Below are positions 13,845 to 43,461 of a stretch of 64,000 nt of DNA, in pieces. The notes under the pieces are model-generated. The model saw nothing but the letters and a program-made list of their open reading frames with translations, ran no database searches and had not been told where the DNA came from. Position 1 is the first letter of the stretch, and every line of letters starts with the position of its first letter. This stretch comes from Macrostomum lignano (taxonomy: Eukaryota): NCBI GenBank assembly GCA_002269645.1, contig NIVC01001685.1, positions 62,001 through 126,000 on the forward strand, in the 5' to 3' direction. The translations under genes and the position numbers were made by a program.

Positions 13845-15800
13845 TCTGATCCCTTGAGTACAGATCCCTAATCCCTGAGCACAGATCCCTAATCCCTGAG
13901 CACAGATCCCTGATCCCCTGAGCACAGATCCCTGATCCCCTGAGCACAGATCCCTGATCCCCTGAGCACAGATCCCTGATCCCCTGAGCACAGATCCCTG
14001 ATCCCCTGAGCACAGATCCCTGATCCCCTGAGCACAGATCCCTGATCCCCTGAGCACAGATCCTTGATCCCCTGAGCACAGATCCCTAATCCCCTGAGCA
14101 CAGATCCCTAATCCCCTGAGCACAGATCCCTGATCCCCTGAGCACAGATCCCTGATCCTCTTAGCACAGATCCCTGATCCCCTGAGCACAGATCCTTGAT
14201 CCCCTGAGCACAGATCCCTGATCCCCTGAGCACAGATCCTTGATCCCCTGAGCACAGATCCCTGATCCCCTGAGCACAGATCCCTGATCCCCTGAGCACG
14301 GATCCCTGATCCCCTGAGCACAGATCCCTAATCCCTGAGCACAGATCCCTAATCCCCTGAGCACAGATCCCTGATCCCCTGAGCACGGATCCCTGATCCC
14401 CTGAGCACAGATCCCTGATCCCCTGAGCACAGATCCTTGATCCCCTGAGCACAGATCCTTGATCCCCTGAGCACAGATCCTTAATCCCCTGAGCACAGAT
14501 CCTTGATCCCCTGAGCACAGATCCCTAATCCCCTGAGCACAGATCCCTAATCCCCTGAGCACAGATCCCTGATCCCCTGAGCACGGATCCCTGATCCCCT
14601 GAGCACAGATCCCTGATCCCCTGAGCACAGATCCTTGATCCCCTGAGCACAGATCCCTGATCCCCTGAGCACAGATCCCTGATCCCCTGAGCACAGATCC
14701 TTGATCCCCTGAGCACAGATCCCTAATCCCCTGAGCACAGATCCCTAATCCCCTGAGCACAGATCCCTGATCCCCTGAGCACGGATCCCTGATCCCCTGA
14801 GCACAGATCCCTGATCCCCTGAGCACAGATCCTTGATCCCCTGAGCACAGATCCCTGATCCCCTGAGCACAGATCCTTGATCCCCTGAGCACAGATCCCT
14901 GATCCCCTGAGCACAGATCCCTGATCCCCTGAGCACAGATCCTTGATCCCCTGAGCACAGATCCCTAATCCCTGAGCACAGATCCCTAATCCCCTGAGCA
15001 CAGATCCCTGATCCCCTGAGCACGGATCCCTGATCCCCTGAGCACAGATCCCTGATCCCCTGAGCACAGATCCTTGATCCCCTGAGCACAGATCCTTGAT
15101 CCCCTGAGCACAGATCCTTAATCCCCTGAGCACAGATCCTTGATCCCCTGAGCACAGATCCCTAATCCCCTGAGCACAGATCCCTAATCCCCTGAGCACA
15201 GATCCCTGATCCCCTGAGCACGGATCCCTGATCCCCTGAGCACAGATCCCTGATCCCCTGAGCACAGATCCTTGATCCCCTGAGCACAGATCCCTGATCC
15301 CCTGAGCACAGATCCTTGATCCCCTGAGCACAGATCCCTGATCCCCTGAGCACAGATCCCTGATCCCCTGAGCACAGATCCTTGATCCCCTGAGCACAGA
15401 TCCCTAATCCCTGAGCACAGATCCCTAATCCCCTGAGCACAGATCCCTGATCCCCTGAGCACGGATCCCTGATCCCCTGAGCACAGATCCCTGATCCCCT
15501 GAGCACAGATCCTTGATCCCCTGAGCACAGATCCTTGATCCCCTGAGCACAGATCCTTAATCCCCTGAGCACAGATCCTTGATCCCCTGAGCACAGATCC
15601 TTGATCCCCTGAGCACAGATCCTTAATCCCCTGAGCACAGATCCTTGATCCCCTGAGCACAGATCCCTGATCCTCTTAGCACAGATCCCTGATCCTCTGA
15701 GCACAGATCCCTGATCCCCTGAGCACAGATCCCTGATCCTCTGAGCACAGATCCCTGATCCCCTGAGCACAGATCCCTGATCCCCTGAGCACAGATCCCA
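13845..15800. repeat. 22-bp satellite GATCCCCTGAGCACAGATCCCT
   Basis: About 88 tandem copies; source of the many minus-strand GSGICAQGIRDLC ORFs. Confidence 0.97.
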
Positions 15801-15927
15801 AAAATCCCAATATTTCCCAACTTTCATGTAACATAAATGTCGATGAAAAACGCTAAAAAATACCGCACTACTCACAAGGAAGCTTGAGTAGTATAAAACT
15901 CCCATAAATTGTTGCAGTTTTCCCCAG

Positions 15928-21985: not shown

Positions 21986-22361
21986 TCTCGTACTCCCGGC
22001 TAATGGCTTGCACTTTATACTACATACCGTGAAAAATAATGAAACTCTAACAGCTGAATAACAGCCAATTTGATATGGCTTTGCAAGCTATTCTCTTCTA
22101 TCGGACATAAGAAGATGGATTGTCAAGTATAGCCAATTAATTAATTAAACTTGATAAACTCAAATTGCTTTAACTTCCGCATTCTCATCTCGACCCATTG
22201 GGGCACAGTGCCGAGCCTTCTAATGCATCCTCTCCGAAGCACACTGAATAGTTCAGCATCTGAGCAGCCACTTGCTGCCACCACCAACTCTTGCTCGTCC
22301 ACATCCTCCCTGTAAGCCACATCTCGGATCCAGTATTTAGCTCCCGAGTCTCCTGTTCCGA

Positions 22362-25300
22362 TCAGATCAAATCGCAGTGCTTCAGGAGAGCGTCGAAGTT
22401 CACCAAGAATAAACTTCTGTTCTGCAACTGCAGTGGAAAATAACTTGCAGCAGGTTTTTTATGAAACGGCAGCTCAGGCCGCTCGTCAAAATCGAAGCAG
22501 AACTTCCATGCTGAGTCTCGGCTTCTCAGGTGCTGCATCACGAAGTCCGCAGTCGCCTCACTCGCCGACCTCTCAGCGGACCAGTCGATGCCTCTGCTCA
22601 CCCTGAAATGCCTGCAGTCGCTCACGACTTTCGCTGCAGCCTCTCTGTCGCCGAACTTCAGGCAGCTCAGCGCCCTCAGAGACTCTCGCGCCGAGCGGGC
22701 GCAGTCCGGCAGCTTGCCGATCAGCTCCGAGAGACGCTGTCGGGACTCTGGGCTTCGGTCTCGGTCCGACACACGGAGCACCGACTCTCTCACGACGTCG
22801 TAGATCTCGTGGTACTCGCATTCCTTCGCTTGTGTCACAGGTCGATCAGCTTCCATGTGCGGCAGGATGAGGAACGGGTGGAAGTGGAATCGGCCCGAGT
22901 CGGTGACGGGTCGCAGGCTATCCTCGAACTCCAGCAGCAGCTCAGGCAGCCTATCGATCGCCTCTCTCACTGCATCGGCTGCCTGACTCAAAGCTTCGCT
23001 CACCTCAGCCGGTGTGCTGGTGTCCACGCCTCTCAGGTACACAGCGGCATCGCGAAGGAAGAAGTGGTCCATGATCCTGGCGTCAGGTCCGCCTGATCTG
23101 CAGTCGCTCTCAAGCATCTGCAGCGAGCGTCTCGCGAGACTCACGAGATTCCGAGGGTCGTTCCACTGCTCGGCCGGCGTCTCCTCCAGCATTCGGAACG
23201 CGATGGTCTTTGCGTGATACGACTTGAAGCCGTCGTGTTGGACGGCCTTCTTCAGCAGCCACTTGAGCGTGACGAACAGCTGGCCCTGCAGAGTGGTGAG
23301 ACTCCGCAGCAGCCGCCTCTCCAGGAAGCTGGTGCTCACTCGGAGCTGCTCGCCCTCCTTTCCGGGAGCAGCTGCGTGCACCACGTGACAGGGCGATGAG
23401 GCAGAGGTGAGGAGATGCTGGAGCGACTGCAGCACGGACTGGGGGATGTTTGAGTCGGAGACTCGGTTGTTGAGTAGCGGTGCGATGGGCGGGTAGCGGC
23501 AGAGGCGCCGAGCGTTAACGTGGTCAATAGCTGGTCTTAGAAATGAGCCTTTGAATTGTGTTGCTGGCGTGGAAGCTACAATGCATTTTTCGGCAAGCGG
23601 TTTTGATTAAATAGTAAAGTAGGAAATATTTTTTTCGTGAAGATAATTCTGTTTTTAAATAAATCTGGCTAAAATAAATTAGGGACAATTTTGACGATTT
23701 CCATTAATTTGTTACTACGTAGCTCGTACTTTGGGTTTCTATAATTTTAAAATAGCTCTACTGTTGTTATTAAGTTTGTTTATTTACAGCTATAGTCATT
23801 TTGATTGAAGCTACATGTATTTATGTGCTAGCTAAATCTTTTAATAATTTACTCACCATATCCAGGGCTCTGTATGTGTCCATTATTGTACTTGAAGCAG
23901 TGAGAATTGGTTTCAACGCATTCGCACAGATCCAGCAGATGAATCAGACCTCCCTGGAAAAAATGCGTCACGTCAATGTCCGACTCGATGTTTGTTCTGC
24001 CGTCAAGAGTAGCGAGGGTGTTGCCCCAGCCCTCGGAGAAGCTGCCTACCACAAAGCAATCATTATCATCGAGTCTTCTTCTGATAATGTCCTGCAGCGC
24101 TTCAGCCACAGCGCTCTGCAAGGCGGCTCTGGAGTCCACGAATCCCGACCGATTGAGCGCTTGGTGCAGCTGCTGGCTCAGCTCTTCGTCACTTGGGGTG
24201 GCTCTGCAAAGTCAATTCAAGTCATGAATCGATTTGAAATTTTTCTTACTAAATTCACTAGAAAAATGACTTCGCAAAGCCTTAGTTTTCCAGATAAAAT
24301 TTCGATGCATGCTCAGTAAAAGCGAACTCACATTTCTGTAATCTTCCATGTGAGATCGCTTTGTCTTCTGCCACTGTTCAGTGCACGCTGCAACAGAGTT
24401 GCTGACCTCTCGCTGCCGAATTCTTGAGCGCGTCTCAGTGCAATCCAAATCGATTGTCGATTGTCGACGTTAGCCTGGAGAAGCGACTCGACCACTAGAA
24501 AGTGGTTATTTTGTGATGCGATGTAGAGAGACGACTCTCCGGTGTTGAGCCTAAGATTGACATCCGCTTTTGCTTTGAGCAGTACGTTAACCACGCGATG
24601 ATGCCCAATTATTGATGCAATGTAGAGAGGTGACTCACCTGTGTTTAACTGAAGATTGACATTGGCCCCAGCTTTGATCAGCAATTCGACTACTGCGTGA
24701 TGCCCGTTTAGTGACGCAATATATAGAGGCGACTCGCCGGACCTTGTCCGACATTCTACTTCTGCCCCAGCTTCGATGAGTAAACTGACAATTCGCTTGC
24801 AGTTATATTTGGATGCAATGTAGAGCGGTGAATCGCCACTTCTCATCGGAAGATTGACGTTAGCTTTCGCTTTGATCAACAATTCGACTACATAACCGTG
24901 ACCGTTTTGCGATGCAACGAACAGGGCCGATTGGCCGATTTTTCTTTGGAGATCGACGTCCGCTCGTGCTTTGATAAGGAGTTGGACGACCAAATAATGA
25001 CCATTTTGAGAGGCAGTGTACAGAGGCGACAATCCAGTGCTTTGTTGCAGATTGACGTTGGCTCGAGCTTCAATTAGCGATTCAACAACGTGCCGATGAC
25101 CTTTTTGTGCTGCGATATAGATTGGTGACAGGCCCGACTTCTTTCGGAGATTTACATCGGCTCGAGCTTTGATAAGTAAATTAACTACCCGATAGTGACC
25201 ATTTTGTGACGCGATGTACAGTGGAGACGTACCTGAGTTTGCTTGGTGATTGACGTTGCCTCGTGAATTGATGAGTGATTCAACGATAAGATGATAACCT

Positions 25301-26220
25301 TGTTGGGATGCAATGTAGAGTGGAGACAGCCCAGTGTTGTCCGGGATATTTACATCGGCTCCAGCGTTAATGAGCAAGTTAACAACATCGTTGTGGTCGT
25401 TTTGCGATGCAACATAGATGGGGGTGCAGCCTCTTGTCTGAAGATTTAAATCCGCTCGAGCCTTGACGAGTAAGTCGACCACAAGAAGATGGCCATTTTG
25501 TGAAGCAACATACAGCGACGACGAACCGTGCGATTTTTCCAGAAGATTCACTTCTGCTCCGGCGCCAATTAGTAAGTCAACAACCCTAAAATGACCTTCC
25601 TGAGAAGCAATATAAAGAGGTGATGAGCCAGTGTTTCTCTGCAGATTTACTTTAGCTCCTTCTTTAATAAGCTTTTTGACAACAAGATGATGGCCTTCCT
25701 GCGATGCAGCGTAGAGAGGTGAACGCCCGTCGACCTTTTCCTGAAGATTGACATCGGCTTGAGCGTTGATTAGTAACTTGACTATTTCATGATGACCATT
25801 TTGTGAGGCAATGTAGAGAGGCGATTCGCCAGTGTTTCGCTGAATATTGACGTTAGCTTTTGCCTTAATTAGCGAGTCGACCACGTGACGATGGCCTCGC
25901 TCTGATGCGAGGTAAGCTGCAGCGATGCCGTCTCGGTTTTGCCGGTCCAATTTTATGTTTTCTTTAACAAATCTGAGCAAAATTTCGTTCATTCCGTAAT
26001 TGCAGGCCACCATTGCCGGAGTGACTTCGACTTACCTGTAAGTTAAAAGCTTATCCACGCTCCTGCCACTGGTAATGTAGCTCTCGACCGCTTCCAAATT
26101 GTTTGATTCGATTGCCGAAATAAGATATTCGTCTAGGAGCTCTGCCCCAGGCTCCCGCTTGGTGAGGAGTCGCAAACAGCAGGCGGCCACTGCGCTGCAA
26201 AGTCTTTGAATTGGACCCAT
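22362..26220 (-). CDS. Ankyrin-repeat cGAS-like receptor (ANK-cGLR/Mab-21) copy A; carries an in-frame TAA at 26032-26034 and a 1-nt frameshift near 22383, possibly a pseudogene
   Basis: Exons 26220-24332 (leader plus ~16 ANK), 24203-23857 (NTase: GSFSEG...SDID) and 23575-22362 (IDHV third acid, [17 protein letters not shown] Mab-21 motif); phases 2 and 1 match. The paralogous C-terminus continues in a shifted frame to the stop at 22143-22141. Confidence 0.8.
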
Positions 26221-27009
26221 TGGATGGATATCAAAACAGCGCTTTAGCCTAACAGGTAGCGTAGTTTGCGTTTATTTATATCTTTCTGCTGCCGGAGCAG
26301 TACTGCGCGGCTATTGTTGGCAATACAAGCCTGTCACTTCGACTAATGAGAAAGTGCGGCTCGATTACAGTTCAGTTACAATTGCAGTAAAGTTTCGAAG
26401 TTTCATGAGTGATCGCTGCGCAACTTCAAATCTACGGAGTCTACTAGCTGCTGTCCACTTTCGGGGAATCGCGAAGATCCATTTTTCCGGAAGCTCTGGC
26501 AGTGTAGATGGTGAAACTTTATACATAAAGATTGGATTCGTCTTATATCGAAGGCAGATTTGAGACACAAAGTGCAGCACAGGAATTGAATACCATGAAT
26601 TTAGTTAGGTTGATAAATTTTAAAAGCAGATTACTGCAAGTATATCCAATGTTGCTGTCGAGGAATTCTTTTCTCCGCAGTTGACATGCTAATAAATTAA
26701 ATAAATACATATTGTACGGACACACTATTATATAGGCATAAACTGTCAAGCAAAAGCAAGCAGGGACTAACACGAGCGTAAAATACATGCGTGTACATTT
26801 CACAAAGATTGGCCCTCATTGCACTCAGATCCCCGAGAAATTCGAAACCATCCAATGCACTAGGCTTGAAAAAACGCCCCCCCCTCACCAATAAGGGGTG
26901 TTTCAGTGCAATTATACTACTGCAAAACTTGCGAAAAGACTTGCAAAGGATTTATTTTAATGCAAACTATGACAGCAAAACTATAATCTCTAATCAAATG
27001 TCTAATCTC

Positions 27010-27480
27010 TACATGTAAAAATGAAAACTGAAAGAACTAAATGAGAGAAATGAGAAGAGATAAGAGAGAAAAGATAAAAGCGAAAGGAGAGATAGATAAG
27101 AAAGCAAAGACGAGAGAAGAGAGGTGAGGGAAAAGACGATAGAAGAGAGGAAAGGAGAGAGAGGAGAGAGTAGAGAGGAGTGAGGAGAGGAGAGAGTTGA
27201 GAGACGAGAGCAGAGAGGAGAAAGGAGAGAGATGAGTGAAGTGTTGAGAAAGGGTAGAGTAAGGAGTGAGAAGAGAGGAGAAGGAAGAGAGAGCAGAGAA
27301 ATGAGAATAGATAAAAGAGGAGAAAGGGAGAGATGAGAGAGCAGAGACGAGAGAAAAGAGAGGAGAGGAGAGGGGAGAGAAAAGAATAGAGGGGAGAGGA
27401 AATAGACGAGAGAAGAGGGGAGAGAGGAGAGAGAGAAGAGACCAGAGACGAGAGAGAAGAGAGGAAACACAAGAGAAGAT
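27010..27480. repeat. Purine-rich (GA)n low-complexity tract
   Basis: Direct inspection; produces spurious Leu/Ser ORFs on the minus strand. Confidence 0.9.
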
Positions 27481-29949
27481 ATAAGTTTCTAAGGATCCAA
27501 GGGACATAAGGAGAGACAGAGGCAGAGGCCAGAGGTGCCAATACATGAAATCCTAATTTTACACAATTGTACTCCATTTTATGTTTAACCCTATCCTTAC
27601 TAACTAATAACAAGTTTTTGTTTGAGTATTGCCCCATATACAATAATACATGCAAAAATAGCTCCGAGAATTAAAATTCCCCGGGTTCAAAATCCGCGCG
27701 TTTCAACAGCTTGTCCCATATAAATTAAGCGACGAATCATTGGATTGCATTGAAGCAAAAACTTTTCAAGGATGAAAACCATACCAATGATTCCCAAGGA
27801 TTCGAAAAATCGAAAATCATAAACGATGAAACAGCGAAAACAGCAATATCACAAATGTGACAAAACTGACTTCGACTACTTCATCCAACCCAACAAAAAC
27901 ATCTCACGCCTCAAAATTCCAATGATTTTCACAATTTTTGTAACTATTCTCAAAGAAAAATTTCTCACAATACTGTTCTGCTGTCCCCACACTCTGCATT
28001 GGATCTTTAACTGCTTCTTACTGCTCAGTCACCGTTGATTTTACACCTGCCCCGTTCCGACCATGGATTTCGTCGCATTTAAGCGAACAGAGGTGGCCTC
28101 CATCTCCATCCTGCTGCTCAGATTGGCGGCCCCAACGCTGGCCTGCGGGCTGCACCGGCTGTCGAAAGTCGAATTTAATTTCTATACTTGCTGGGATCAA
28201 CGTGATCTAGACACCAGGTCACTTGGCGACGAGCTTGTGGAGCAACTCGCCAAACGAGGACGCAACCTCGGGCAGTGCAGTAAAGCTCGGTCAAGCCGCC
28301 AACCTGCAGGAAGTCATACGTGATCCCTGCTATAAACCAGAATGTATCCGAATAACTAATCTTTCAAATGAAACTGACCTCAGGGAGACTTGCATAGTAA
28401 TCAGTAGCCATTGCTTCTTCCAGAGGCATATTTCACTACAAAGTGGTTGCTTCCCCATCTGCCCCCTCGCCACCTTCTGCCGGCACTTCGACGAAGCGCG
28501 GAGACATCACCTCCGCTGCCCGTTAAGGTGGGTCAAGCTGACCACCCCATATCGGATCCGTGACCTACTAGCATTCGTCTGGGGTTCGAGCAGATGCCAC
28601 TCTCGCGAACTCTTCTGCTGCTGGCGATGGATGGCACAGCCCCAACCTTTGGGGCCTAATCAATGTTGAAGTTATAGAAAGTCTCCATTATTTAAGAGTG
28701 GTCTGAAACCGTTCTGCGTTTTTCCACCAAACCCACTGAAAGAATTGACACATTCTATAGCAGATAGAACGTAGACATAACGGTTCTCCAGATCATAATG
28801 TTGGATAAAGATGAATAGCTAATGCCGAAAACCGTAATGATTTCTTTCGGAAATTGTTATATCTGTTTTACGTTGAAAAAAGTATGGGCCTACAGGTAGC
28901 CGTTGAAAATTTCTGCTTCAGAAATACAGTGAGGGAATGAATGTCCAATGTCCATACGGGAGCAACCGTTTGAGATTTGGAAACATTGCAAGTCGGCTGG
29001 TGCTAAATCTGGTAATATCGCAGACAGGGGAAGGTTGCAACGAGCGTCGTGTATTGCGACGTGTGCAGCCTGACATTGCCATGATGAAGAAGCAGCGGGC
29101 AGCTAAGGCAGCGGGATGTGTGCAACCTGGTGAAATTTGAACGACATTGTCACAACCGACGAGAGGCATTACTGCCCATTCCGCCGACTCCCCTGAGCAG
29201 GCATACATACAATCGCGCGCGGCTACGTACGCAGTCATACACACAGGCACACACTCACACAGGAGTTTACAGCGGTCTTAATTTTATTTATCGTTAGGCA
29301 TGTACACTTCACTGCACCTTGGGGGTTGGCTCTCAATAGCGTTAATTGCAAGAGTAGAGCAGAGAAGTTCTTAGAATCGATTCTGGGCCGCTGGCACGTA
29401 AGAGTACCGCGCTACTAGACCACTAGTCTCGAGCCTACGACACCCCGTCCTGACAATGTCGGGCATTTCTTAGAAAATCTGGTTACTATAATTCCTGCAT
29501 GGAAAAACAGAGCTTCGAACTACAAAATAATTACGCCGTCAAGCTTCTAAAATGTTTTAATAATAGCAAAAGAATCTGTTTATTGTTGGATTCATTTTGA
29601 GTTGAAGCAATGTCATAATTTAGTCAGATATTTAAGACAGATAGTGGATTGTAAACATGAAATAAAAAATTATTTTTTTTTAATTATTACGGCACATTGT
29701 AAATCTACTTTGCAAGTAAGACAACAGTGAATTTTGTGTTTCTGTAATTAGATGTTCACATTTTTATATACACTAAGCAGTACTAGCATTTAGAAGTCGC
29801 TTTCAAAACGTTCAATCTTCCTATTTAAATGTACCTCAGAAGGTGCAAATCTCAGAAAAAAGTACCAGTGTATAGGTTGGGCTATATCAGACAGATTGAC
29901 ACAGACTGGCCTCAGACATTGAGTTCCAACGTGGAGTTACAGACGCAGT

Positions 29950-32900
29950 TTACTTAAAGACACTCGGCTCCAGCCAAGGTGGGACTTTGCCGAACCTCCT
30001 GATGCATGAATTGCGGAATGACCGCCGCAGCTCGAAGTCTTCACAATAAAGGGAAGCCACATGCAACTCCTGATCATCCGCATTCTCATCCTGTGCCACA
30101 TTCCGGATCCAGTCTCGACCTGAAGATTCTCCTGCTCCAATCAGATCAAAGTGGAGTGCCAACAGCAGGGCCTCAAAGTTGAAATAGTACGAAGAGCTGT
30201 AGTTTCCTGCATTTTTTGGAAAACTTACTTTAACTTGGCTTTTAACTGGCAGCTCAGGCCGCTCGTCAAACCAAAAGCAGAACTTCCACGCGGAGTCTCG
30301 GCTCCTCAAGTGCTGCATCACAAAGTCCGCAGTCGCCTCACTCGCCGACCACTCAGCTGGCCAGTCGATGCCTCTGCTTGCCCTGAAATGCCATAATTCG
30401 CTCACGACTTTCGCTGCAGCCTCTCCGTCGCCGAACTTCAGGCAGCTCAGCGCCCTCAGAGACTCTCGCGCCGAGCGGGCGCAGTCTGGCAGCTTGCCGA
30501 TCAGCTCCGAGAGACGCTGTCGGGACTCTGGACTTGGGTCTCGGTCTGACACACGGAGCACCGACTCTCTCACGACGTCATAGATCTCGTGGTACTCGCA
30601 TTCCTTCGCTTGTGACACAGGTCGATCAGCTTCCATGTGCGGCAGGATGAGGAACGGGTGGAAGTGGAATCGGCCCGAGTCGGTGACGGGTCGCAGGCTA
30701 TCCTCGAACTCCAGCAGCAGCTCAGGCAGCCTATCGATCGCATCTCTCACTGCATCAGCTGCCTGACTCAAGGCTTCGCTCACCTTCTCAGCCGATGTGC
30801 TGGTGTCCACGCCTCTCAGGTACACAGCGGCATCGCGAAGGAAGAAGTGGTCCATGATCTTGGCGTCAGGTCCGCCTGATATGCAGTCGCTTTCAAGCAT
30901 CTGCAGCGAGCGTCTCGCGAGACTCACGAGATTCCGAGCGTCGTTCCACTGCTCGGCCGGTGTCTCCTCCAGCATTCGGAACGTGATGGTCTTTGCGTGA
31001 TACGACTTGAAGCCGTCGTGTCGGACGGCCTTCTTCAGCAGCCACTTGAGCGTGACGAACAGCTGGCCCTGCAGAGTGGTGAGACTCCGCAGCAGCCGCC
31101 TCTCCAGGAAGCTGGTGCTCACTCGGAGCTGCTGGCCCTCCTTTCCGGGAGCAGCTGCGTGCACCACGTGACAGGGCGATGAGGCAGAGGTGAGGAGATG
31201 CTGGAGCGACTGCAGCACGGACTGGGGGATGTTTGAGTCGGAGACTCGGTTGTTGAGTAGCGGTGCGATGGGCGGGTAGCGGCAGAGTCGTCGGGCGTCA
31301 ACGTTGTCAAATGCCGGTCTCAGCTTGGATCCTTCCATTGCTATCGATGGTTTTGAGGCTGAAATTCGTTTGATGGGGTATAATAGTTCGTTGACGCATT
31401 AAAACCATAGAATAATGTATACATTAGACGTGCTAATGATGTTTATCTACATGTACGCTCGTATACCCAAAATTTGCAGCCTGCAGACTAAACTCACTAC
31501 GGAGAATGTCTTAGGCTATCTTAAAATTTTCTTGATCCAAGTCTTTCTACCTAAAAATGCAAGACTGCTAAAAAGCGCGATTTTTTCACTAAATCCTCCA
31601 TAGGGTTGCTCCACTTTATTAATCCTATTCGAATTTAACACAATCTTTAACTATTTTGACACAAACCCGTGAAATTTCAGGTGTTAAAGTCAACCCGAAA
31701 CGGTGCTGTGCATAGTTTGTCTGTTTTTTTTGTAAGGGGAAGACAGCCACCCAGATCTCCGCCTGCCTCTCTTTTCTTCGCTTACGAGTATCTGGCCTTG
31801 GTGTAAATGGGTTTCGAAATTTACTATCTTCCGGCTGCCATAAGTTTGCTCTACGTGAAGCGATTGACTGCAAACTGGAAACAATTCTTCATTGATATAT
31901 TTTCTGTCTAAATAATGGCGGACGGTCTGTCTGACCTGTTTGGCACTTCATATGACCTGTTGACTGTGCCGGCCGACATCCCAGCGGATCTGAAGTGCCG
32001 CAGCGCAGAGGGGCAGACGACCACGCTCGCACGCTGCCAGCGGTTCACCTACCTCGGCGGCCTGGTGCCCTACGTGGAGGAGGACCTCCTGCGGCGCAGA
32101 GGACTTGCCTGGGCGGCTTCCGTTCGATTCGAGCAATCCTCCAGTCCGAAGCGCTGCCCGATCGCCAGAGGGCTCGGCTGTCGCAGGCGATGGTCGAAAC
32201 CGTCCTGCTCTACAACGCCGAGACGTGGACGCTCGTGGAGGCTACGCTAGAGCGGCAGCTAAACTCGGCGCACTCAGGGCTGCTACGTGCGGCCTTTCAA
32301 GCTGAAGAGAGCGTTGGGACTGAGGCCCTGTACGATCGGGCCAAGCTGCAGCGCAATTCCACCATCCTGCGCCGAGGACTACTAACCCCAACCTGTTCAT
32401 GACGTCCTGCTGCTCACCTTGCAGGGCCCCATCAGGCGGGGTCAGGCCCGGACCCGTCGATACGGGTACACAGGATTATACACAGGACTGCCTGCTGTGC
32501 AACGCCCGACACTGCCAACATGGCGAACTTCGTCCGCTCTCAGGCTCTGCGGCTTTCCATCTGACGCGCCCTGCTCTAACTGTGACCTTGCATGCTTGGC
32601 TGCGTATTTTGTTGGTCTCTCCTTGGCTCCTCTGTCTCTCCTTGGCTGCGGCTTCTATTCCGTTTTATTATTTTTGTTGATAGTATTAGAATATTAGATA
32701 GTATTATTTTTACCACGAGTTTTTTTCCAAGGTTTGTTTACCTATATTCTTATTTTCAATTTTAACAAATTCACGGGCTTCAACAGCTCGTATAATATGT
32801 GTTTACGCCACACTCAAATTAATGTTTACAACGGTAATTTAAAGGCATTAAGGACATCGCTCTCACCGTATCCGGGATACAACACGTGCCCATTGCTGTA

Positions 32901-35900
32901 CTCCACTGTTTCGGGCTCCGCCCCAGCGCACTCGCATAGATCCCTCAGGTGGATGCTGCTTCCTGGGAGCAGCTGCATCACGTCAATGTCGGATTTAGGG
33001 TCAGTTCTGCCATCCAGAGTAGCCAGGCTGTTGCCCCAGCCTTCAGAGAAGCTGCCTACAATGAAGTAATCATTATAATCGAGTCTTTTCCTCAACATGC
33101 TCTGCAGCGCGTCAGCCGTAGCGCTCTGCAAGGCGGCTCTGGAGTCCACGAATCCCGACTGATTGAGTGCTTGGTGCAGCTGCTGGCTCAGCTCTGCGTC
33201 GCTGGGGGCGGCTCTGAAGGTTGAGTGAGACGAAATCTGTCATCTGATTAGCATTAAATTTTAAGAATAGAGTTTCCAGACGATTTTTCTTTCTTGAGAA
33301 CTCTCTCCCTAAACCCCCCCATTTTTTGCATATTTCTTCACATCTTCACTTAAGTCAGGGTTTTGAAGCTTGGTGTCAGTTGTTTTGTGCTTGAGAAAAT
33401 CAAATTTAAAATCAAAATAAAATGCTGCTGCTTCTTATTTTATTTCTTTGAGTGATATTGCCACAAGTAAAGCCATCAGACGTATTTCTTTCAGATATTC
33501 TACTTTCAATGTAATTGCCAGCTGACCCCAAGTCTATACAGTGAAAAGCTTCGTTGACTGCACTAAACATCGCCGCGACTAGAGACGAACTGAACCCGCT
33601 TAAATATTGTCTAATCACTGTTACGATAAAATACCGTATCTCACCTCTTCAAAGGCAACGGAGTCAAAGGCTGTCGATAATGCCCACTCATGGCTTCGGT
33701 CAGCATCCGTGTAGTTTCCCTGTTTTCCAGTTCCTGGGCTTGACTAAATGCGGCATGTAAGTCATCAGAATGAGTGACAGCAGCGCAGGCATGAAGAAAA
33801 AGCAGCTCAAAAGCCTCAATATGGCCATTCTGTGATGCAACTTCAAGAGGTGAGCTGCCATCAGCAGATTTAAGATTAATGTCCGCTTGCCCTTTAATAA
33901 GTGCGTAAATTACTTTCTGATGACCCTTCTGGGATGCAATGTAAAGAGGTGACATGCCTTGGTATTGTTGAATATTTACGTCGGCTTGTGCTTTGATAAG
34001 CGACTCAATTACTTCGTGATGACCCTTCTGTGATGCAATGTGGATAGGTGACTCGCCAGTGTTTCGTTGAAGATTGACGTCGGCTTGTGCTTTGATGAGT
34101 GACTCAATTACTTTGTGATGACCATTCTGTGATGCAACATGGAGAGGTGACTCGCCAGTGTTTCGTTGAAGATTGACGTCAGCTTGTGCATTGGTGAGTG
34201 ACTCAATTACTTCCTGATGACCATTATGCGATGCAACGTAAAGAGGCGACGCACCTTGGTTTTGTTGAAGATTGACGTCAGCTTGTGCATTGATGAGTGA
34301 CTCAATTACTTTGTGATGGCCATTCTGTGATGCAATGTAGAGAGGTGAGTAGCCTTGGTTTTGTTGAATATTGACGTCGGCTTGTGCTTTGATGAGTGAG
34401 TCAATTACTTTGTGATGACCATTCTGTGATGCAACATGGAGAGGTGACGAGCCAGTGTTTTGTTGAAGATTGACGTCGGCTTGTACTTTGATAAGTGACT
34501 CAATTACTTTGTGATGACCAATTACAGATGCAATGTAGAGAGGTGACGCGCCAGTGTTTTGTTGAAGATTGACGTCGGCTTGTGCTTTGATGAGTGACTC
34601 AATTACTTTGTGATGACCATTCTGTGATGCAATGTAGAGAGGTGAGCAGCCTTGGTGTTGCTGAAGATTGACATCGGCTTGTGCATTGATGAGTAACTCA
34701 ATTACTTTGTGTTGACCATTCTGTGATGCAACGTGGAGAGGTGATGCGCCTTGGTTTTGTTGAATATTGACGTCGGCTTGTGCTTTGATGAGTGAATCAA
34801 TTACTTTGTGATGACCATTCTGTGATGCAACGTGGAGAGGTGAAGAGCCAGTGTTTCGTTGTAGATTAACGTCGGCTTGTGCATTGATGAGTGACTGAAT
34901 TACTTTGTGATGGTTATTCTGTGATGCAACGTAGAGAGGAGATGCGCCTTGGTTTTGTTGAAGATTGACGTCGGCTTGTGCTTTGATGAGTGAATCAATT
35001 ACTTTGTGATGACCCTTCTGTGTTGCAACGTGGAGAGGTGATACGCCTTGGTTTTGTTGAATATTGACGTCGGCTTGTGCTTTGACGAGTGACTCAATTA
35101 CTTTGTGATGGCCATTCTGTGATGCAATGTGGAGAGGTGACTCGCCAGTGTTTTGTTGAAGATTGACGTCGGCTTGTGCTTTGATGAGTGAATCAATTAC
35201 TTTGTGATGACCATTCTGTGATGCAACGTGGAGAGGTGATGCGCCTTGGTTTTGTTGAATATTGACGTCGGCTTGTGCTTTGATGAGTGCCTCAATTACT
35301 TCTTGATGACCCCTGTGTGATGCAATGTAGAGAGGTGACTCGCCAGTGTTTCGTTGTAGATTAACGTCGGCTCGTGCATTGATGAGTGAGTCAATTATTT
35401 TGCGATGATTATTCTGTGATGCAACGTAGATAGGTGAATCGCCAGTGTATGCTTGAAGATTGACGTCGGCTTGTGCATTGATGAGTGACTCAATTACTTC
35501 GTGATGATTATTCTGTGACGCAGTGTAGAGAGGTGAGCAGCCTTGCTTTTGTTGAAAATTGACGTTGGCTTGTGCTTTGATGAGTAACTCAATTACTTTG
35601 TGATGACCTTTCTGTGATGAAATGTAGAGAGGTGATGAGCCAGTGTTTGCTTGAAGATTGACATCAGCTTGTGCTTTGATGAGTGAGTCAACTACTTTAT
35701 GATGACCTAGGATGGATGCAATTAGCAGTGCTGTTGTTCCATCTTCAGTTTGTAGGTCGAGATTAGCTTTTGCTGCAATTAATTTTATTAATATTTCGTG
35801 TCTGTCAAAAAAACTCGCTACCATCGCGAGTGTTAAATTCTTTCCATTAAATTTTACAACTCTGTCGACACTCTTCGCCTTGGAAACAAATTTGTCAATC

Positions 35901-36028
35901 GTCTTCAGGTCATTCTCAGTTATCGCTTTAATGAGAGTTTCGTCCGAGAGCTCTGCGTCAGATCCGGATTCGAACACGGGCATGCAGAAGGCGCCCACGA
36001 AATTCAGCAGCCATTCCAGGAATCGCAT
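29950..36028 (-). CDS. Ankyrin-repeat cGAS-like receptor (ANK-cGLR/Mab-21) copy B, intact, about 1379 aa
   Basis: Exons 36028-33645 (~21 ANK), 33213-32867 and 31358-29950; total 4140 nt in frame, [54 protein letters not shown]. Confidence 0.88.
31915..32400 (+). mobile_element. Degenerate RTE-like non-LTR retrotransposon 3' fragment inside intron 2 of ANK-cGLR B
   Basis: Frameshifted peptides RFTYLGGLV...[11 protein letters not shown] and IRAILQS...[22 protein letters not shown] match the typical post-RT region of RTE-clade LINEs (FxYLG...R.G.AW.AF...VLLYGxETW). Confidence 0.75.
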
Positions 36029-37689
36029 GGCAGTGGGCCTGTGTGTCTTGCTTAGTTACCGAATACTGTGTTTTGGCTTATGGTTGCTTTTGGGCTTTCA
36101 GACCTTAAGAAGGCCGCAGTTGAAAAGTTTAAACAGAATGTGTGGGCAGAAAATATAATTAAGCAGACTATGAACCAATGAGTGAGTGCTGATGCAGTGG
36201 CTGGCTGGCCGTTAGTCTTCCAGTTTTCTCTCGGTTAAATTTATATTTCTACTGTAGAAAATTTGACAACAGTGAGTGACCACTGACAAAAATATAAACG
36301 ATTTCAAATGTTTGTCAAGTTTTTTTAAGAAAACAACAGTAGTCCTTGGGTGCGGCATTCATCATGGAAGCCAGCATGCTACTGTCCCTTGGGCCTGTGA
36401 AAACATTGATTCAAATATAGACAAGTGTTGTCTACGACATCTCTTTAACTCAAATTCATTTTTCTCTTTAGTGCATTATTAAAACCGTTAAAGATTAATA
36501 AAAACAGTACTTATGTCTCATCATCAAAAGGAAATCGTCATTGATAAGATGAATCGTGATGAATAAAGTGATGAATCGTTCAATTTGGGTTCAATTCTAA
36601 TCAATTGCATAACAGACAGGGGCATGTATCTATATCTAACATATATCTGCATGGCACATGTCTGAAAAACACCTGTCTGCATTATATGCATCATATAACA
36701 TTTATCTGCATAATACATGTACAAGTATACATAACACTTTTCTGCATTACATCTGTCAGCATAACACCTGTCTGCCTAACACCTGTCTGGATGACACTTG
36801 TCTACATAACACCCATTTTAACGCACGTCTCAACTTTGTCAATGTTTACATAGTCTCAAACTTTTATCTGGCACGGCCCCATCCAGAATAACAAAGGCTG
36901 ACTTGCTTGAGATCGAAGTCGCCCCATACTCAGCTTTCTAACCAATTCAGATTTTCTGCCCAGGGCTGCACTGCTGTCTCTCCAAACGCAAAAACCCAGA
37001 GTTTTTTATTGCTTTACAATTGGAAGAAGAAATAATAGAAAGCAGTGCAACAGTTCTTCGATCGTCCTTCATCTCAGCGCAACTGCGCAATTCTTTCCAG
37101 CCTCTCAGGCGCTATTGAAACAACTGGCAGAGCTCTGCGTCGCCACCCACCAACTCTCCCCACTCCCTCTGCGTCTCAAGCTTCATCTGCGGCTTAGCGT
37201 TCGGTCGGTTGTCATGGCGAAGGTCTCAGACTCTGCATGCTGCAGCTTCGCCTGATATTTTAGTGCCTTAAGAGCCGAGTGTCTCGGCCGCTTTGAGCAG
37301 CTGTGTTCTAAACCGCCACCCAGTGAGTACTCGTCCAGGCACTCGCAGGCCATAAATTATAAAGCTGAGAAACTGGGGCGAAAATGCATTCGTACAAGCG
37401 TAATTGCATTCATTTTTGTCATTTTCAGTGTTGGGTAAAACCTCATCCAGTATTAAAAACATTAATAATGTTTTGGCATTGAGTCCAAGTTAAAGACTCA
37501 AATTATGTAACTTCAATTTGCTGTTTTCTCGTTAAACTGTAGCACAATATTGTACCTGGAGAATGGAACAAAAATTAAAAGTAAAAACTCATATAGAGGT
37601 CACCAAATCTCTTCAACTCAAAATGGTTCCTCAATCAATTAAGCCCGGGTCACATTTTATAACTGCGAATCCTGCCACCGTTTTGTCGC

Positions 37690-38955
37690 TAATCTCCCAG
37701 CTGGAAGAGTGATGAAGAATCACTAATCACCCATCTGGAAGCTGGAAGAGTGATGAAGAATCGCTAATCACCCATCTGGAAGCTGGAAGAGTGATGAAGA
37801 ATCGCTAATCACCCATCTGGAAGCTGGAAGAGTGATGAAGAATCGCTAATCACCCATCTGGAAGCTGGAAGAGTGATGAAGAATCGCTAATCACCCATCT
37901 GGAAGCTGGAAGAGTGATGAAGAATCGCTAATCACCCAGATGGAAGCTGGAAGAGTGATGAAGAATCGCTAATCACCCATCTGGAAGCTGGAAGAGTGAT
38001 GAAGAATCGCTAATCACCCATCTGGAAGCTGGAAGAGTGATGAAGAATCGCTAATCACCCATCTGGAAGCTGGAAGAGTGATGAAGAATCGCTAATCACC
38101 CAGATGGAAGCTGGAAGAGTGATGAAGAATCGCTAATCACCCATCTGGAAGCTGGAAGAGTGATGAAGAATCGCTAATCACCCAGATGGAAGCTGGAAGA
38201 GTGATGAAGAATCGCTAATCACCCATCTGGAAGCTGGAAGAGTGATGAAGAATCGCTAATCACCCATCTGGAAGCTGGAAGAGTGATGAAGAATCGCTAA
38301 TCACCCATCTGGAAGCTGGAAGAGTGATGAAGAATCGCTAATCACCCAGATGGAAGCTGGAAGAGTGATGAAGAATCGCTAATCACCCAGCTGGGAGAGT
38401 GATGAAGAATCGCTAATCACCCATCTGGAAGCTGGAAGAGTGATGAAGAATCGCTAATCACCCAGATGGAAGCTGGAAGAGTGATGAAGAATCGCTAATC
38501 ACCCAGCTGGGAGAGTGATGAAGAATCGCTAATCACCCAACTGGAAGAGTGATGAATAATCGCTAATCACCCAGCTGGGAGAGTGAAGAAGAATCGCTAA
38601 TCACTCAGCTCGGAGAGTGATGAAGAATCGCTAATCACCCAGCTGGGAGAGTGATGAAGAATCGCTAATCACCCAGCTGGGAGAGTGATGAAGAATCGCT
38701 AATCACCCAGCTGGGAGAGTGATGAAGAATCGCTAATCACCCAACTGGAAGAGTGATGAATAATCGCTAATCACCCAGCTGGGAGAGTGAAGAAGAATCG
38801 CTAATCACTCAGCTCGGAGAGTGATGAAGAATTGCTAATCACCCAGCTGGAATAGTGATGAAGAATTGCTAATCACCCAGCTGTAAGAGTGATGAGGAAT
38901 TGCTAATCACCCAGCTGGAAGCTGGAAGAGTGATGAAGAATCGCTAATCACCCAT
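37690..38955. repeat. 41-bp satellite (CTGGAAG)2AGTGATGAAGAATCGCTAATCACCCAT, shifting to a 34-bp variant
   Basis: About 33 tandem copies with no unique spacers. Confidence 0.95.
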
Positions 38956-39019
38956 CATAAGAACATCAAATAGACTCATAAGAGAATATCTCGGTATATC
39001 TGCGAGTCTTACAAATCTG

Positions 39020-39200
39020 TGAGCGTAGCTCGTAAGCACTGGAAAATTGCTCACATCGGAGCGGAAAAAAACAACCTCTGGGCGTCTCGACTAAAGCTAC
39101 TCAAACAGACCAGCTGCAGACTAGCCCACCTCAATCCCTAAAGGACAATAGCGAAGCTGAGGTTTGAGGGCCAAGCCAGCAGCCTGCCAACGCGTGACAC
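39020..39200 (+). mobile_element. Possible LINE reverse-transcriptase C-terminal remnant
   Basis: Peptide KHWKIAHIGAEKNNLWASRLKLLKQ loosely resembles the W..HI..+..K...RL.+L+ segment of LINE ORF2. Confidence 0.3.
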
Positions 39201-39719
39201 AGCTAATACTCACAGAGTAATAATATTCGGTATGGCGAATTCTAAGATAAGAGCCTCACACTCATAACAGGGTTTTTAGAGGCCAGTGTGCTTGGTAGTC
39301 TCACAAAAAACTTGCAGCTTTTCAAAGTGTTTTAGATTAGCATGCTCAGGCAGAGTTGTACTATAGTCGATTTATTGATTTTCTAGGGTTTTATACTTTT
39401 AGCGGCATGTAACTAAGAGTAATTTTAATAACAAAACTAAAATTACTTGATTTCATAAATTTTTGAATAAGTTGAAATATACAATAAACTCAGGTTGATC
39501 TCAGATTTATTTGCAAAGAATTGTATCTATCATTAAGGTAGATTAGGGAAATTACAAGCATCTTCAGTTCAGTTATTAAAAATATATAAGTCGCACAATA
39601 GGTACAAAACAAAAGATCAACTAAATGAAAGTAGCAAAGCCCCAATGTAGCTCGTACATGAGCCTGACAGATCAGACAAATTTCCCTTTCTTTATGTGCA
39701 CCTCATTGGTTTGACTAAG

Positions 39720-42700
39720 CTACTCCAGTCTCGCCTTCTTGGCCTTCGGTTCGAACTCACCTGACAAATACTGCATCTTCAGATCCAGCCATTGTGGCAC
39801 GTCTCCAAACACCCTGACGCTCTTATTTCGAAGGAGACGCAACAGTTCCACATCTTCGCAGCCATAGGACGCAACCAGCAGCTCTTGCTCATCAACAGCA
39901 TCTTTACACAGCGCAACATCACGTATCCAATTTTCACTGTTTGAGTCTCCTGTCCCTAGCAGCTCAAAGCATAGGGCCTGAAGAAGAGCGTCAAAATTCA
40001 CAAAGAAGTACGTTCTGTAATTCTCCATTTCGACTGGAAAGAATGTTCTGATAAAATCAATTTCTATCTGAAGATCTGGTTGCTCGTCAAACCAAAAGCA
40101 GAACTTCCACGCGGAGTCTCGGCTCCTCAGGTGCTGCATCACGAAGTCCGCAGTCGCCTCACTCGCCGATCTCTCAGCGGACCAGTCGATGCCTCTGCTC
40201 GCCCTGAACTGCCTACAGTCGCTCACGACTTTCGCTGCAGCCTCTCCGTCGCCGAACTTCAGGCAGCTCAGCGCCCTCAGAGACTCTCGCGCCGAGCGGG
40301 CGCAGTCTGGCAGCTTGCCTATCAGCTCCGAGAGACGCTGTCGGGACTCTGGGCTTCGGTCTCGGTCTGACACACGGAGCACCGACTCTCTCACGACGTC
40401 ATAGATCTCGTTGTACTCGCATTCCTTCGCTTGTGACACAGGTCGATCAGCTTCCATGTGCGGCAGGATGACGAACGGGTGGAAGTGGAATCGGCCCGAG
40501 TCGGTGACGGGTCGCAGGCTGTCCTCGAACTCCAGCAGCAGCTCAGGCAGCCTATCGATCGCATCTCTCACTGCATCGGCCGCCTGACTCAAGGCTTCGC
40601 TCACCTTCTCAGCCGATGTGCTGGTGTCCACGCCTCTCAGGTACACAGCGGCATCGCGAAGGAAGAAGTGATCCATGATCTTGGCGTCAGGTCCGCCTGA
40701 TCTGCAGTCGCTCTCAAGCATCTGCAGCGAGCGTCTCGCGAGACTCACGAGATTCCGAGCGTCGTTCCACTGCTCGGCCGGTGTCTCCTCCAGCATTCGG
40801 AACGCGATGGTCTTTGCGTGATACGACTTGAAGCCGTCGTGTCGGACGGCCTTCTTCAGCAGCCACTTGAGCGTGACGAACAGCTGGCCCTGCAGAGTGG
40901 TGAGACTCCGCAGCAGCCGCCTCTCCAGGAAGCTGGTGCTCACTCGGAGCTGCTTGCCCTCCTTTCCGGGAGCAGCTGCGTGCACCACGTGACAGGGCGA
41001 TGAGGCAGAGGTGAGGAGATGCTGGAGCGACTGCAACACGGACTGGGGGATGTTTGAGTCGGAGACTCGGTTGTTGAGTAGCGGCGCAATGGGCGGGTAG
41101 CGGCAGAGGCGTCGGGCGTCAACGTTGTCAAAGGCAGGTCTCAGCTTGGATCCTCCCTCTGCTTTCGATGGTTTTGAGGCTGAAATTTGTACAAGAAGTT
41201 TGGAAAGTTTAGTTAGTATGTCGGTAATGCGTGTATGTGGAAAATTAAGCTACCCGGTATTACCTCGTAATAAATAGCTACATACGTCAAAACTTTCGAG
41301 AAAGCATTGTCCATGTTCCTAATCTGGGACTGCTTCAAGCATATCTTACCATATCCGGGGTTTATGATATGTCCATTGCTGTATTCCATCGTTGGATTGG
41401 TCGAACTAGCGCATTTGCACAGATGCCTCAGATGAATTGGCTGTCCAGTTAACAGCTGCATCACATCTATATCAGATTCCATGGCTGTTCTGCCATCAAG
41501 AGTTGTAAGACTGTTGCCCCAGCCCTCGGAGAAGCTGCCTACCACATGGTACTTGTCATCATCCAATCTGCTTCTCAAAATGTCCTGCAGCGCATCAGCC
41601 ACGGCGCTCTGCAATGCGGCTCTGGAGTCCACGAATCCCGATTGATTGAGCGCTTGGTGCAGCTGCTGGCTCAGCTCTGCGTCGCTGGGGGCGGTGGGGG
41701 CGGCGGCTCTGAGGGTTGAACAGGGTTTGGCTTTATTGCTTGATTCACTAAATTTTTTTATCATTTTTCCTTAAAGAGTCAAGTAGTTCAAGCGTACGAG
41801 CGTCAATATAACTACTGCAGTTTAATCTTGTAAAACAATCAAACACCAGATTCAATGTAGCATAGATATGCAAAATATGGCTAAATATTGAATATAAAAA
41901 CCATCTAACTTATTTTAGAAACTCACTTTATTGATTGCAGCTTTACGTGCTTCCTGATTGAGACGCCATTCAAAGACGATTGAAGCATTGAAGCGGCTTT
42001 AAATTGATCGAATTCCTGAGCTCTAAACAGTGCCTCCTTTAGCAGCTTTTTTAAACTTCCTGTGCTGCAGACTGCAGGAATGAGCAACTGGAGGACACGA
42101 CTGTGACCGTTCTGTGCTGCCATGTAGATAGCTGACTCGCCAGTGTCTCGCTGAAGGCTGACATCGGCTTGTGCCTCGATGAGTAACTTGACGACACGGT
42201 GATGACCATTCTGCGATGCCACGAATAGAGGTGACTCACCGGTGTCTTGCTGAAGATTGACGTCAGCTTGTGCCTTGATAAGTGTCTTGACAACTTTTAC
42301 ATGACCATACTTTGATGCAATATAGAGAGGGGACAAGCCATCGTCGTCTTGAAGATCAATGTCGGCTTGTGCTTTGATGAGTGAGTCCACCACTCTTTGA
42401 TGGCCACTTCTTGAAGAAATGAAGAGAGGTGACTCGCCAGTGTCCCTCTGAAGATTGGCATCTGCTTGCGCTTTAATAAGCAAATCAACGATTTTGCTGT
42501 GGCCTTCTTGTGACGCATTGTAAAGAGGTGAGCAGTCGTTATTATCTTGAAGATTGGCGTCGGCATTTGCCCTAATAAGTGAGTCGACGACTTTAACGTG
42601 ATCATTCTGCGATGCAATATTAAGAGGGGAAGCGCCATCTATGTCTTGAAGATTTACATCGGCTTGTGCTGCAATAAGGGTGTTTACGACATGCGGATGA

Positions 42701-43461
42701 CCTTGCTGTGCTGCAATGTAAAGAGGTGAGCAGCCATCGGCTTGTTGAAGGTTTACGTCCGCTTGTGCTTTGATAAGTCTGTCAATGACTTGTTGATGAC
42801 CTTCCTGTGAGGAAATATAGAGAGGTGATATTCCATGGATTGCCTGAAGATTGACGTCGGCTTGTGCTTTGATAAGCGAGTCAACTACTTGGTGATGGTC
42901 GTTTTGTGAAGCGATGTAAAGAGGTGACTCGTCGTTTGCTCCTTTCAAATTGACGTCGGCTTGTGCTTTGACGAGTGAGTTAACGACATGCAGATGACCC
43001 AGCTGGGATGCCATATAGAGAGGTGAGCAGCCTTCGAGTTCTTGAAGATCCACATCGGCTATTGCTCGGATGAGTGAGTCAGAGACAAGCTGATGACCCT
43101 GCTGTGCTGCGACGTAGAGAGGTGAGCCGCCGTCGACTTGTTGAAGATTGACGTCGGCTTGCGCTTTGACAAGAGTTTCGACAACTTGATTGTAACCATA
43201 CTGAGAGGCGATGAACAAAGCCGTGATTCCGTCTTCAGTCTGAATGTCAACATCTGCCTTAGCTTTGATAAGTCTCATCAACATCTCATGCCTTTCAAAC
43301 TGGCCAGCTAGCATGACTAGAGTCAAATTGTGGCCATCAATACTCACAGATCTGTTAACTGACTTCGCGTTGGAGGTGAAGCCGTCAATGGTTTTTAGAT
43401 CGTTAGTTACTATAGCTCTCACGAGAGCTTTGTTCGACGGCTCAGCGGCAGACCTTCGCAT
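39720..43461 (-). CDS. Ankyrin-repeat cGAS-like receptor (ANK-cGLR/Mab-21) copy C, intact, about 1117 aa
   Basis: Exons 43461-41927 (~13 ANK), 41708-41350 and 41179-39720; total 3354 nt in frame, [41 protein letters not shown]. Confidence 0.88.

Follow-up and report, generated by a model that had tools for sequence, protein, structure and literature searches.

A tandem cluster of ankyrin-repeat cGAS-like receptor genes in the flatworm Macrostomum lignano

Can an ankyrin-repeat array gate a cGAS-like enzyme? This question is raised by a stretch of 64,000 nucleotides from the genome of the flatworm Macrostomum lignano (contig NIVC01001685.1 of assembly GCA_002269645.1, positions 62,001 to 126,000; the whole stretch is called the window in the following). 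Three paralogous genes, named A, B and C in the order of ascending coordinates, lie on its minus strand between positions 22141 and 43461. Each of them encodes a protein composed of 13–21 ankyrin (ANK) repeats, a Mab-21/cGAS-like nucleotidyltransferase (NTase) and a C-terminal helical domain of ~260 amino acids. The three genes represent a tandem cluster in an M. lignano-specific clade of cGAS-like receptors (cGLRs) and probably belong to innate immunity. So far, cGLRs fused to ANK or tetratricopeptide (TPR) repeats have never been assayed with their repeat domains attached, and several active cGLRs answer to “unknown ligands”. The intact and compact genes B and C offer a way to ask whether the repeat array controls the enzyme.

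The rebuilt spliced models of the three genes share one plan with three exons, intron 1 being in phase 2 and intron 2 in phase 1, and all six introns (6/6) show GT...AG borders. Exon 2 has a length of 347 nt in A and B and of 359 nt in C, and intron 2 spans 1508 nt in B versus 170–281 nt in C and A. The resulting products comprise 1117 aa for gene C and 1379 aa for gene B. A tblastn search with the non-ANK part of C as query detected exactly three copies within the window. Gene C is identical to the GenBank entry PAA65091.1 (“hypothetical protein BOX15_Mlig030155g1”, 1117 aa; 100% identity over a 600-aa core query in an exhaustive phmmer search), with exon 1 corresponding to residues 1–511. 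Its exon 2 starts at the acceptor 41708 and not at the alternative 41747; the former corresponds to the homologous sites in A and B and fits PAA65091.1. For gene B, GenBank calls a 1313-residue gene over the exact 6079-bp span. The gene models that GenBank gives for this assembly come from a genome-guided RNA-seq transcriptome (StringTie/TACO/TBONE; PMC5730564), so that transcripts back the splice between the ANK and the NTase exons in C and B at least. Both of these genes look functional. Their introns and the exact match with a contig of a flatworm rule out that the genes come from a bacterium or a virus. Within gene B, intron 2 (31359–32866) contains a GC-rich insert with antisense open reading frames (ORFs; plus strand, 31915–32402), which resembles a retroelement fragment and gave no Pfam match.

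The assignment of the core to the cGAS-like enzymes is based on structure as well as on sequence profiles. In a Foldseek comparison of the AlphaFold2 core model (pLDDT 82.6, pTM 0.85) with the PDB, 50 out of the 50 best matches were cGAS structures (E 8e-8 to 3e-6, probability 1.00), with 350–410 aligned columns and TM values of 0.5–0.6 relative to the target. A family profile built from 14 sequences (alignment A1) likewise matched only cGAS among the PDB sequences (E 5e-6), and the best matches of the gene C core in a phmmer search of the same sequences were only cGAS, in the SYHxKT region (E 0.035). Using hhalign, the stretch from the RVSTSFLE region to SYHAKT paired with RLSFSHIEKEIL (RLSFSHIE)...SYHVKT of cGAS, with a gap at the Zn-ribbon of vertebrate cGAS; here, the target was human cGAS, and the C-lobe alone was aligned, with a probability of 65%. 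Mab-21_C was reached at E <= 0.01 by 7 of the 14 family members (best E 1.4e-7). The N-lobe is connected by phmmer, over query residues ~106–270, to Mab-21 NTase proteins of PF03281, a link that is weaker than that of the C-lobe, and the most distant phmmer matches are ordinary PF03281+PF20266 proteins. Both kinds of homology that Li et al. 2023 ask of cGLRs are present, namely sequence homology (in the C-lobe, by profile, hhalign and Mab-21_C) and structural homology of an AlphaFold2 model to known cGLR/CD-NTase enzymes. Given that fold and profile point to cGAS, the sub-threshold Pfam matches to VPS9 and to poly(A)-polymerase-type (MTPAP-like) proteins were dismissed as noise. The core has an isoelectric point (pI) of 5.7–6.6, compared to 9.1 for the catalytic domain of cGAS.

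All three genes encode the residues expected of a catalytic NTase: GSFSEGWG, SDIDV 20 residues after GS, and a third acid in PA(F/I)D(N/H)V...RRLC. Within alignment A1, which includes paralogues down to 37% identity, G52, S53, D74 and D76 never vary, conservation of D132 is 90% or higher, and the pattern GS-X20-D(I)D-X~51-PAxD is present in 68 family sequences. In the core model, GS lies just past strand 48–51, DxD on strand 74–80 and D132 on strand 130–139, positions that match the expectation for a Pol-beta-type NTase. As hhalign aligned only the C-lobe, the equivalence of these residues to those of cGAS rests on the motif pattern, the position within secondary structure and the Foldseek superposition. 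The published cGLR motif reads h[QT]GS-X8-20-[DE]h[DE]h-X50-90-h[DE]h (Li et al. 2023, PMC9980059). With (V/I)VGS-X20-DIDV-X51-PA(F/I)D(N/H), the three proteins agree with it in GS, both spacings and the three acids but do not match the strict form, and they follow the looser rule of the same authors (G[S/G] loop plus [E/D]h[E/D]-X50-90-[E/D]). An earlier note on this DNA, made from the letters alone, had put forward fusions of an ANK array to a cGAS-like NTase with one common three-exon plan, spliced ANK and NTase exons and a retained GS/DxD/D triad. The rebuilt models agree with this plan, phases included, and the two exons are joined in the RNA-seq-derived GenBank model; Pfam confirmed the ANK arrays, while the cGAS-like fold was recovered by Foldseek and by the family profile as described above, and the catalytic residues turned out to be conserved even across paralogues that are only 30–40% identical.

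The N-terminal arrays show a periodicity of 33 aa with the consensus G-x-SPL-x-A-x-x-GH, which places the proteins among the ankyrin-repeat proteins (Pfam Ank_2 for gene C, E 5e-136). Counting in-register 33-residue repeats before the caps gave 14 for A, 20 for B and 12 for C. At the nucleotide level, the array of gene B is a 99-nt tandem repeat with 19.1 copies and 84% matches according to TRF. Repeat number differs between paralogues as well as between two copies of the locus. In each gene, the canonical ANK binding positions (2, 3, 5, 13, 14, 33) have roughly double the entropy of the other positions. A linker of ~20 residues joins the array to the N-terminal spine helices of the core. Gene B begins with a hydrophobic 19-mer, and an M. 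lignano paralogue (P0042, MetaClust) has a hydrophobic, Cys-rich N-terminal stretch (GYIIIFGVLGHVLIGLLICCGLCCCPCC) ahead of its ANK array; this may point to membrane anchoring of some family members or to fused gene models.

Beyond the cGAS-like fold, the proteins continue for ~260 residues after the Mab-21 C-lobe, which ends near core residue 335. This part carries family-invariant motifs including FHPF, EYHxIY, DSAWKF and NF(D/E)AL and, when modelled alone, is predicted to be helical with two small hairpins (pLDDT 85.2). Foldseek revealed no structural neighbour in the PDB (best E ~1, generic helical repeats), the sequence matched neither PDB entries nor Pfam, and sequence relatives were found only inside the M. 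lignano family. Annexin, the best PDB sequence match with an E of 0.18, was rejected as a relative. As judged from sequence and model, the region is a separate, uncharacterised domain. Exon 3 had been labelled simply a Mab-21 exon before; the C-lobe is indeed present, but this label overlooks the second conserved domain.

How do the three genes relate to each other? The central ~885 nt of exon 3 are 97–99% identical among A, B and C, with a synonymous divergence (dS) of 0.043–0.052, whereas exon 2 shows 76% nucleotide identity (dS 0.5–0.8, nonsynonymous divergence dN ~0.2) and the last ~400 nt of exon 3 show ~68% (dS 0.6–1.2). The introns are mutually unalignable, and dN/dS amounts to ~0.25–0.45 in the non-converted parts. 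A more than tenfold fall of synonymous divergence within one block indicates gene conversion and not selection alone. The converted block takes in the Mab-21 C-lobe and extends halfway through the C-terminal domain. Its protein identity is 96% in a UniRef sequence of M. lignano (P0001) and 83–86% in P0002 and P0004, and more distant paralogues show no contrast between block and flanks. This mosaic marks constant parts, likely the signalling interface, versus freely diverging parts, likely the sensor.

A second copy of gene C (C') is located on contig NIVC01000591.1. It is 99–100% identical, and hence too close for dN/dS, and shares the neighbours MRPL55-like and ATP synthase subunit c with C. 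Such a duplicate is in keeping with the DV1 assembly, which is known to be redundant (PMC5730564). The same contig harbors a B-like gene (L003 16464-19055); its ANK exon carries many substitutions and encodes 863 aa, versus 795 aa for the one in the window. Because this exon differs while the copies of gene C are 99–100% identical, the ANK array appears to change faster than the rest of the locus.

The family itself is large and centred on M. lignano. In a database clustered at 90%, all 39 matches (39/39) came from this species, and an exhaustive search returned 129 clusters at 50% identity, 95 of them with E < 1e-10. Two proteome releases and the duplicated chromosomes make these counts too high. 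Among ten matches sampled, seven (E ~1e-93 to 1e-19) carry the name of M. lignano; P0111 (E 3e-14, MetaClust accession) and P0126 (E 1.2e-6, ENA record) come without an organism name, and the tenth, a TPR-Mab-21 protein, comes from a bivalve (E ~1e-4). Within the family, A, B and C constitute a subclade of their own, with 56–84% identity to the best paralogues in the database.

Fusions of this kind are not new, and the novelty suggested by the earlier note was overstated. A survey of ~3,000 animal cGLRs found some with ankyrin or TPR modules (Li et al. 2023, Cell; preprint PMC9980059), and ANK-cGLRs are a named architecture class therein (Fig. 1C/S2A, Table S2). The same study notes that, apart from Mab21-like proteins, cGLRs are absent from “most platyhelminthes”. 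Its Table S2 includes M. lignano PAA accessions with Ank_2 domains, and rows 89–93 of Table S3 list five M. lignano proteins that were cloned as cores for the biochemical screen; the “active enzyme” column is empty for these five and filled for Sp-cGLR1 and Cg-cGLR1, and M. lignano is absent from the accessible part of Table S5 (PMC9980059). The ANK-cGLRs of that study (PAA86972.1, PAA45980.1, PAA57558.1, PAA93208.1, PAA68676.1; Stylophora pistillata) likewise have their ankyrin repeats N-terminal to the core. The five proteins from M. lignano are 30–38% identical to the core of gene C over ~400 aa (E 1e-48 to 1e-69). They share with A, B and C the GS-X20-DxD loop, RxSTSxLE, YHxKT and the start of the C-terminal domain, but A, B and C form a subclade apart from them. 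Architecture and family are thus already published, and the proposed gating has already been voiced in the field; as far as we found, no description exists of the C-terminal domain, of the mosaic left by gene conversion or of the acidity of the core.

Compared to vertebrate cGAS (PDB 6CT9, 4K9B, 5XZB), the flatworm family shares the bilobed Mab-21 NTase fold, the GS loop and the DxD + D triad, and the C-lobe motifs RLSFSxxE and SYHxKT have counterparts in it. Identity is only ~15%, however, and the family lacks the Zn-ribbon and the basic N-terminal tail, has an acidic surface, and extends the loop from GS to DxD to 20 residues (11 in cGAS). Unlike cGAS, it carries an N-terminal ANK array and the C-terminal extension of ~260 aa. 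The nearest sequence relatives outside flatworms are TPR-fused bivalve cGLRs (E ~1e-4), for example KAL3855470.1 of Sinanodonta woodiana (P0133), which also combine a Mab-21 core with a helical-repeat module in a lineage-expanded family. In contrast, their TPR repeats are C-terminal, they pass the Mab-21 thresholds of Pfam and they do not have the flatworm C-terminal domain.

The earlier description as a triad of intact genes went too far with respect to gene A. Here, the frame homologous to that of the B and C N-termini has its start codon at ATG 26220, and a TAA interrupts this frame at 26034–26032, which leaves the ORF starting from Met 26013 N-terminally truncated. This TAA sits inside a perfect donor consensus, CAG|GTAAGT, and a cryptic in-frame intron of 63 nt (26035–25973, ending with TTTTGCTCAG at 25973) is conceivable from the sequence. 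In exon 3, a 1-bp deletion near 22378 (AAGG to AAG in comparison with B and C) leads to a stop at 22362 and truncates the last ~73 codons, and homology runs on in the +1 frame to the TAA at 22141 (tblastn match 22383–22159 in the other frame). The proposed gene end at 22141 is consequently reached only if the frameshift is ignored, while the actual frame stops at 22362. As the assembly is based on PacBio/Canu (PMC5730564), the 1-bp indel may be an error. Altogether, gene A is probably decaying or mis-assembled, i.e. a young pseudogene or an assembly error.

Which function could such proteins have? On balance, we consider it probable that the NTase makes a nucleotide signal upon a non-nucleic-acid trigger sensed via the ANK array or the C-terminal domain. 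The core would produce a nucleotide second messenger from nucleoside triphosphates. The ligand would be recognised by the ANK array, by the C-terminal domain or by both, and the array would be tethered through the ~20-residue linker to the spine helices leading into the GS activation loop. In cGAS, the N-terminal helices pass ligand binding on to the GS loop. The trigger would probably be a protein or another non-nucleic-acid ligand and not double-stranded DNA or RNA (dsDNA, dsRNA) on a basic groove, since the core is acidic and a high pI is associated with dsDNA/dsRNA-sensing cGLRs (Li et al. 2023, PMC9980059). That the array may sense a ligand and gate synthesis, as the earlier note had proposed, agrees with the acidic core and with the variation at the ANK binding positions. 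The cluster would further evolve like an immune-receptor family by tandem duplication, change of repeat number and divergence of ANK arrays, N-lobe and tail, with gene conversion keeping a common central module amid this divergence. Several points weigh against this interpretation. A, B and C remain below the Pfam gathering threshold (14–16 bits for PF20266 at a cut-off of 24.1), and neither the exons nor the spliced core matched PF03281; it is thus profile and fold that place them in the superfamily, although other family members pass the threshold. They deviate from the strict cGLR motif by V in place of Q/T before GS and by N/H after the third acid, and their GS-to-DxD spacing of 20 equals its upper limit. 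Raised entropy at the binding positions is usual for ANK proteins, which makes it weakly informative and no proof of ligand diversification. The five relatives from Li et al. (30–38% identical) bear no “active” label in Table S3, in a screen of cores with a nucleic-acid ligand pool only. Finally, cGAS and STING have been reported as lost in Schistosoma mansoni and Schmidtea mediterranea, and our literature search on STING in Macrostomum found nothing, no sequence search for STING having been made in M. lignano.

One alternative explanation could be a non-enzymatic Mab-21 scaffold similar to MAB21L1 or MiD49/51, in which the fold would serve only for binding or as a structural element, with the ANK array turning the protein into an adaptor. 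The acidic core would suit this role, as would the large C-terminal domain and the ANK array, both modules of the interaction type, and none of the five cloned M. lignano relatives (0/5) is among the 15 enzymes labelled active. However, of the five active-site residues, most are gone in Mab-21 proteins that are not catalytic (Wu et al. 2014). This holds for MAB21L1, MiD49 and MiD51, which belong to the same fold superfamily, whereas the flatworm family kept all of its catalytic residues; the (near) invariance of GS, DxD and the third D across paralogues down to ~30–37% identity argues for selection on catalysis, so that we rate a scaffold as unlikely, if still worth considering. Alternatively, the proteins may be classical cGLRs activated by nucleic acids, as cGAS or Drosophila cGLR1, with the ANK array merely localising or scaffolding them. 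The overall fold superposes on cGAS, and the ligands of characterised cGLRs have so far all been dsDNA or dsRNA. But the pI of the core (5.7–6.6 versus ~9 for nucleic-acid sensors), the absence of the Zn-ribbon insertion, seen as a gap in hhalign, and the lack of an active score of the relatives with the nucleic-acid pool of pathogen-associated molecular patterns make this quite unlikely.

The enzyme might also be active with another chemistry, producing linear 2'-5'/3'-5' oligonucleotides or nucleotidylating RNA or protein, instead of forming a cyclic dinucleotide. This would be in line with the unusually long activation loop of 20 residues and with a weak match of GSxxxGWG...SDIDV to the poly(A)-polymerase-type palm model PF22600 (E 0.006–0.06). 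This match is far below threshold, though, and the fold of the whole domain together with the C-lobe motifs is that of cGAS/Mab-21 and not of poly(A) polymerases or terminal uridylyltransferases, and we regard such a chemistry as improbable. That all three genes are decaying duplicates without a present function is hardly credible, even if gene A alone may well be one and the DV1 assembly is highly redundant. The premature TAA and the frameshift of gene A, the latter of which may be a PacBio indel error, stand against B and C, whose ORFs are complete (1379 and 1117 codons), whose splice sites are canonical and whose gene models derive from RNA-seq, and against a dN/dS of ~0.25–0.45 in the non-converted parts. 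For the preferred interpretation of an NTase with a non-nucleic-acid trigger, a more far-reaching version is conceivable, which we consider tentative and rather doubtful. The family might represent an NLR-like repertoire of non-nucleic-acid, probably protein-sensing receptors with ANK arrays, N-lobes and tails diversified for pathogen- or self-derived ligands, in a phylum otherwise regarded as having lost cGAS/STING. The gene-converted module of C-lobe and C-terminal domain would couple them to one shared downstream partner, and a nucleotide not yet known might carry the signal to some receptor that is not canonical STING. By analogy, NLR/STAND receptors also combine a variable repeat sensor with a conserved signalling module and show tandem clusters, variation in repeat number and gene conversion; in contrast to them, the flatworm family has no NACHT/NB-ARC ATPase, and its output module is a nucleotidyltransferase. 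Transgenesis is established in M. lignano, and the signalling output matters as parasitic and planarian flatworms are without cGAS and STING.

The positions of all features within the cluster are listed in Table 1.

Table 1 Features of the ANK-cGLR cluster, given as positions in the window.
Feature	Position	Strand	Content and basis
Gene C exon 1	41927..43461	-	Start codon, ~13 ankyrin repeats, capping helices; ends in phase 2; ORF, Pfam, splice model
Gene C exon 2	41350..41708	-	Linker, N-terminal spine helices, NTase N-lobe; ends in phase 1
Gene C exon 2, predicted catalytic sites	G569-S570 in motif 41539-41516; D591/D593 in SDIDV 41476-41462	-	
Gene C exon 3	39720..41179	-	Third acid, Mab-21 C-lobe, ~260-aa C-terminal domain, stop codon
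Gene C exon 3, predicted third acid	D649 in PAFDNV 41138-41121	-	
Gene C exon 3, C-lobe motifs	RVSTSFLE 40946-40923; SYHAKT 40826-40809	-	
Gene C, C-terminal domain motifs	Start FHFHPF 40490-40473; further motif 40313-40284	-	
Gene B exon 1	33645..36028	-	~21 ankyrin repeats
Gene B exon 2	32867..33213	-	NTase N-lobe; GSFSEGWG 33056-33033; SDIDV 32993-32979
Gene B exon 3	29950..31358	-	Third acid PAFDNV 31317-31300, Mab-21 C-lobe, C-terminal domain, stop
Gene A exon 1	24332..26220 (uninterrupted ORF from Met 26013)	-	~15 ankyrin repeats
Gene A exon 2	23857..24203	-	NTase N-lobe; GSFSEGWG 24046-24023; SDIDV 23983-23969
Gene A exon 3	22141..23575 (frame stops 22362)	-	Third acid PAIDHV 23534-23517, Mab-21 C-lobe, C-terminal domain
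Homogenised exon-3 block, ~885 nt	C 40188-41072; B ~30367-31251; A ~22587-23468	-	Nucleotide identity, dS
C-terminal domain	C 39720-40490; B 29950-30669	-	~260 aa beyond the cGAS-like fold

Further repeats and reading frames were observed between the genes and elsewhere in the window. A satellite with a 41-nt unit (37699–38956, ~33 copies, 92% matches) separates B from C, and a GA-rich microsatellite (27044–27465) lies between A and B. Coding-looking tandem repeats with long repetitive ORFs in several frames occur at 2688–4929, 7761–9921, 11644–12411, 13770–16007, 56459–57665 and 60545–63069. A Pfam search with ten other ORFs of the window gave nothing significant. Two similar ORFs with a weak immunoglobulin-like match are located at 602–1054 and 7235–7780, and two further similar ORFs, at 3536–4822 and 11117–11596, contain a hydrophobic and possibly membrane-spanning stretch. 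These paired ORFs suggest that another duplicated pair of genes lies upstream of the cluster.

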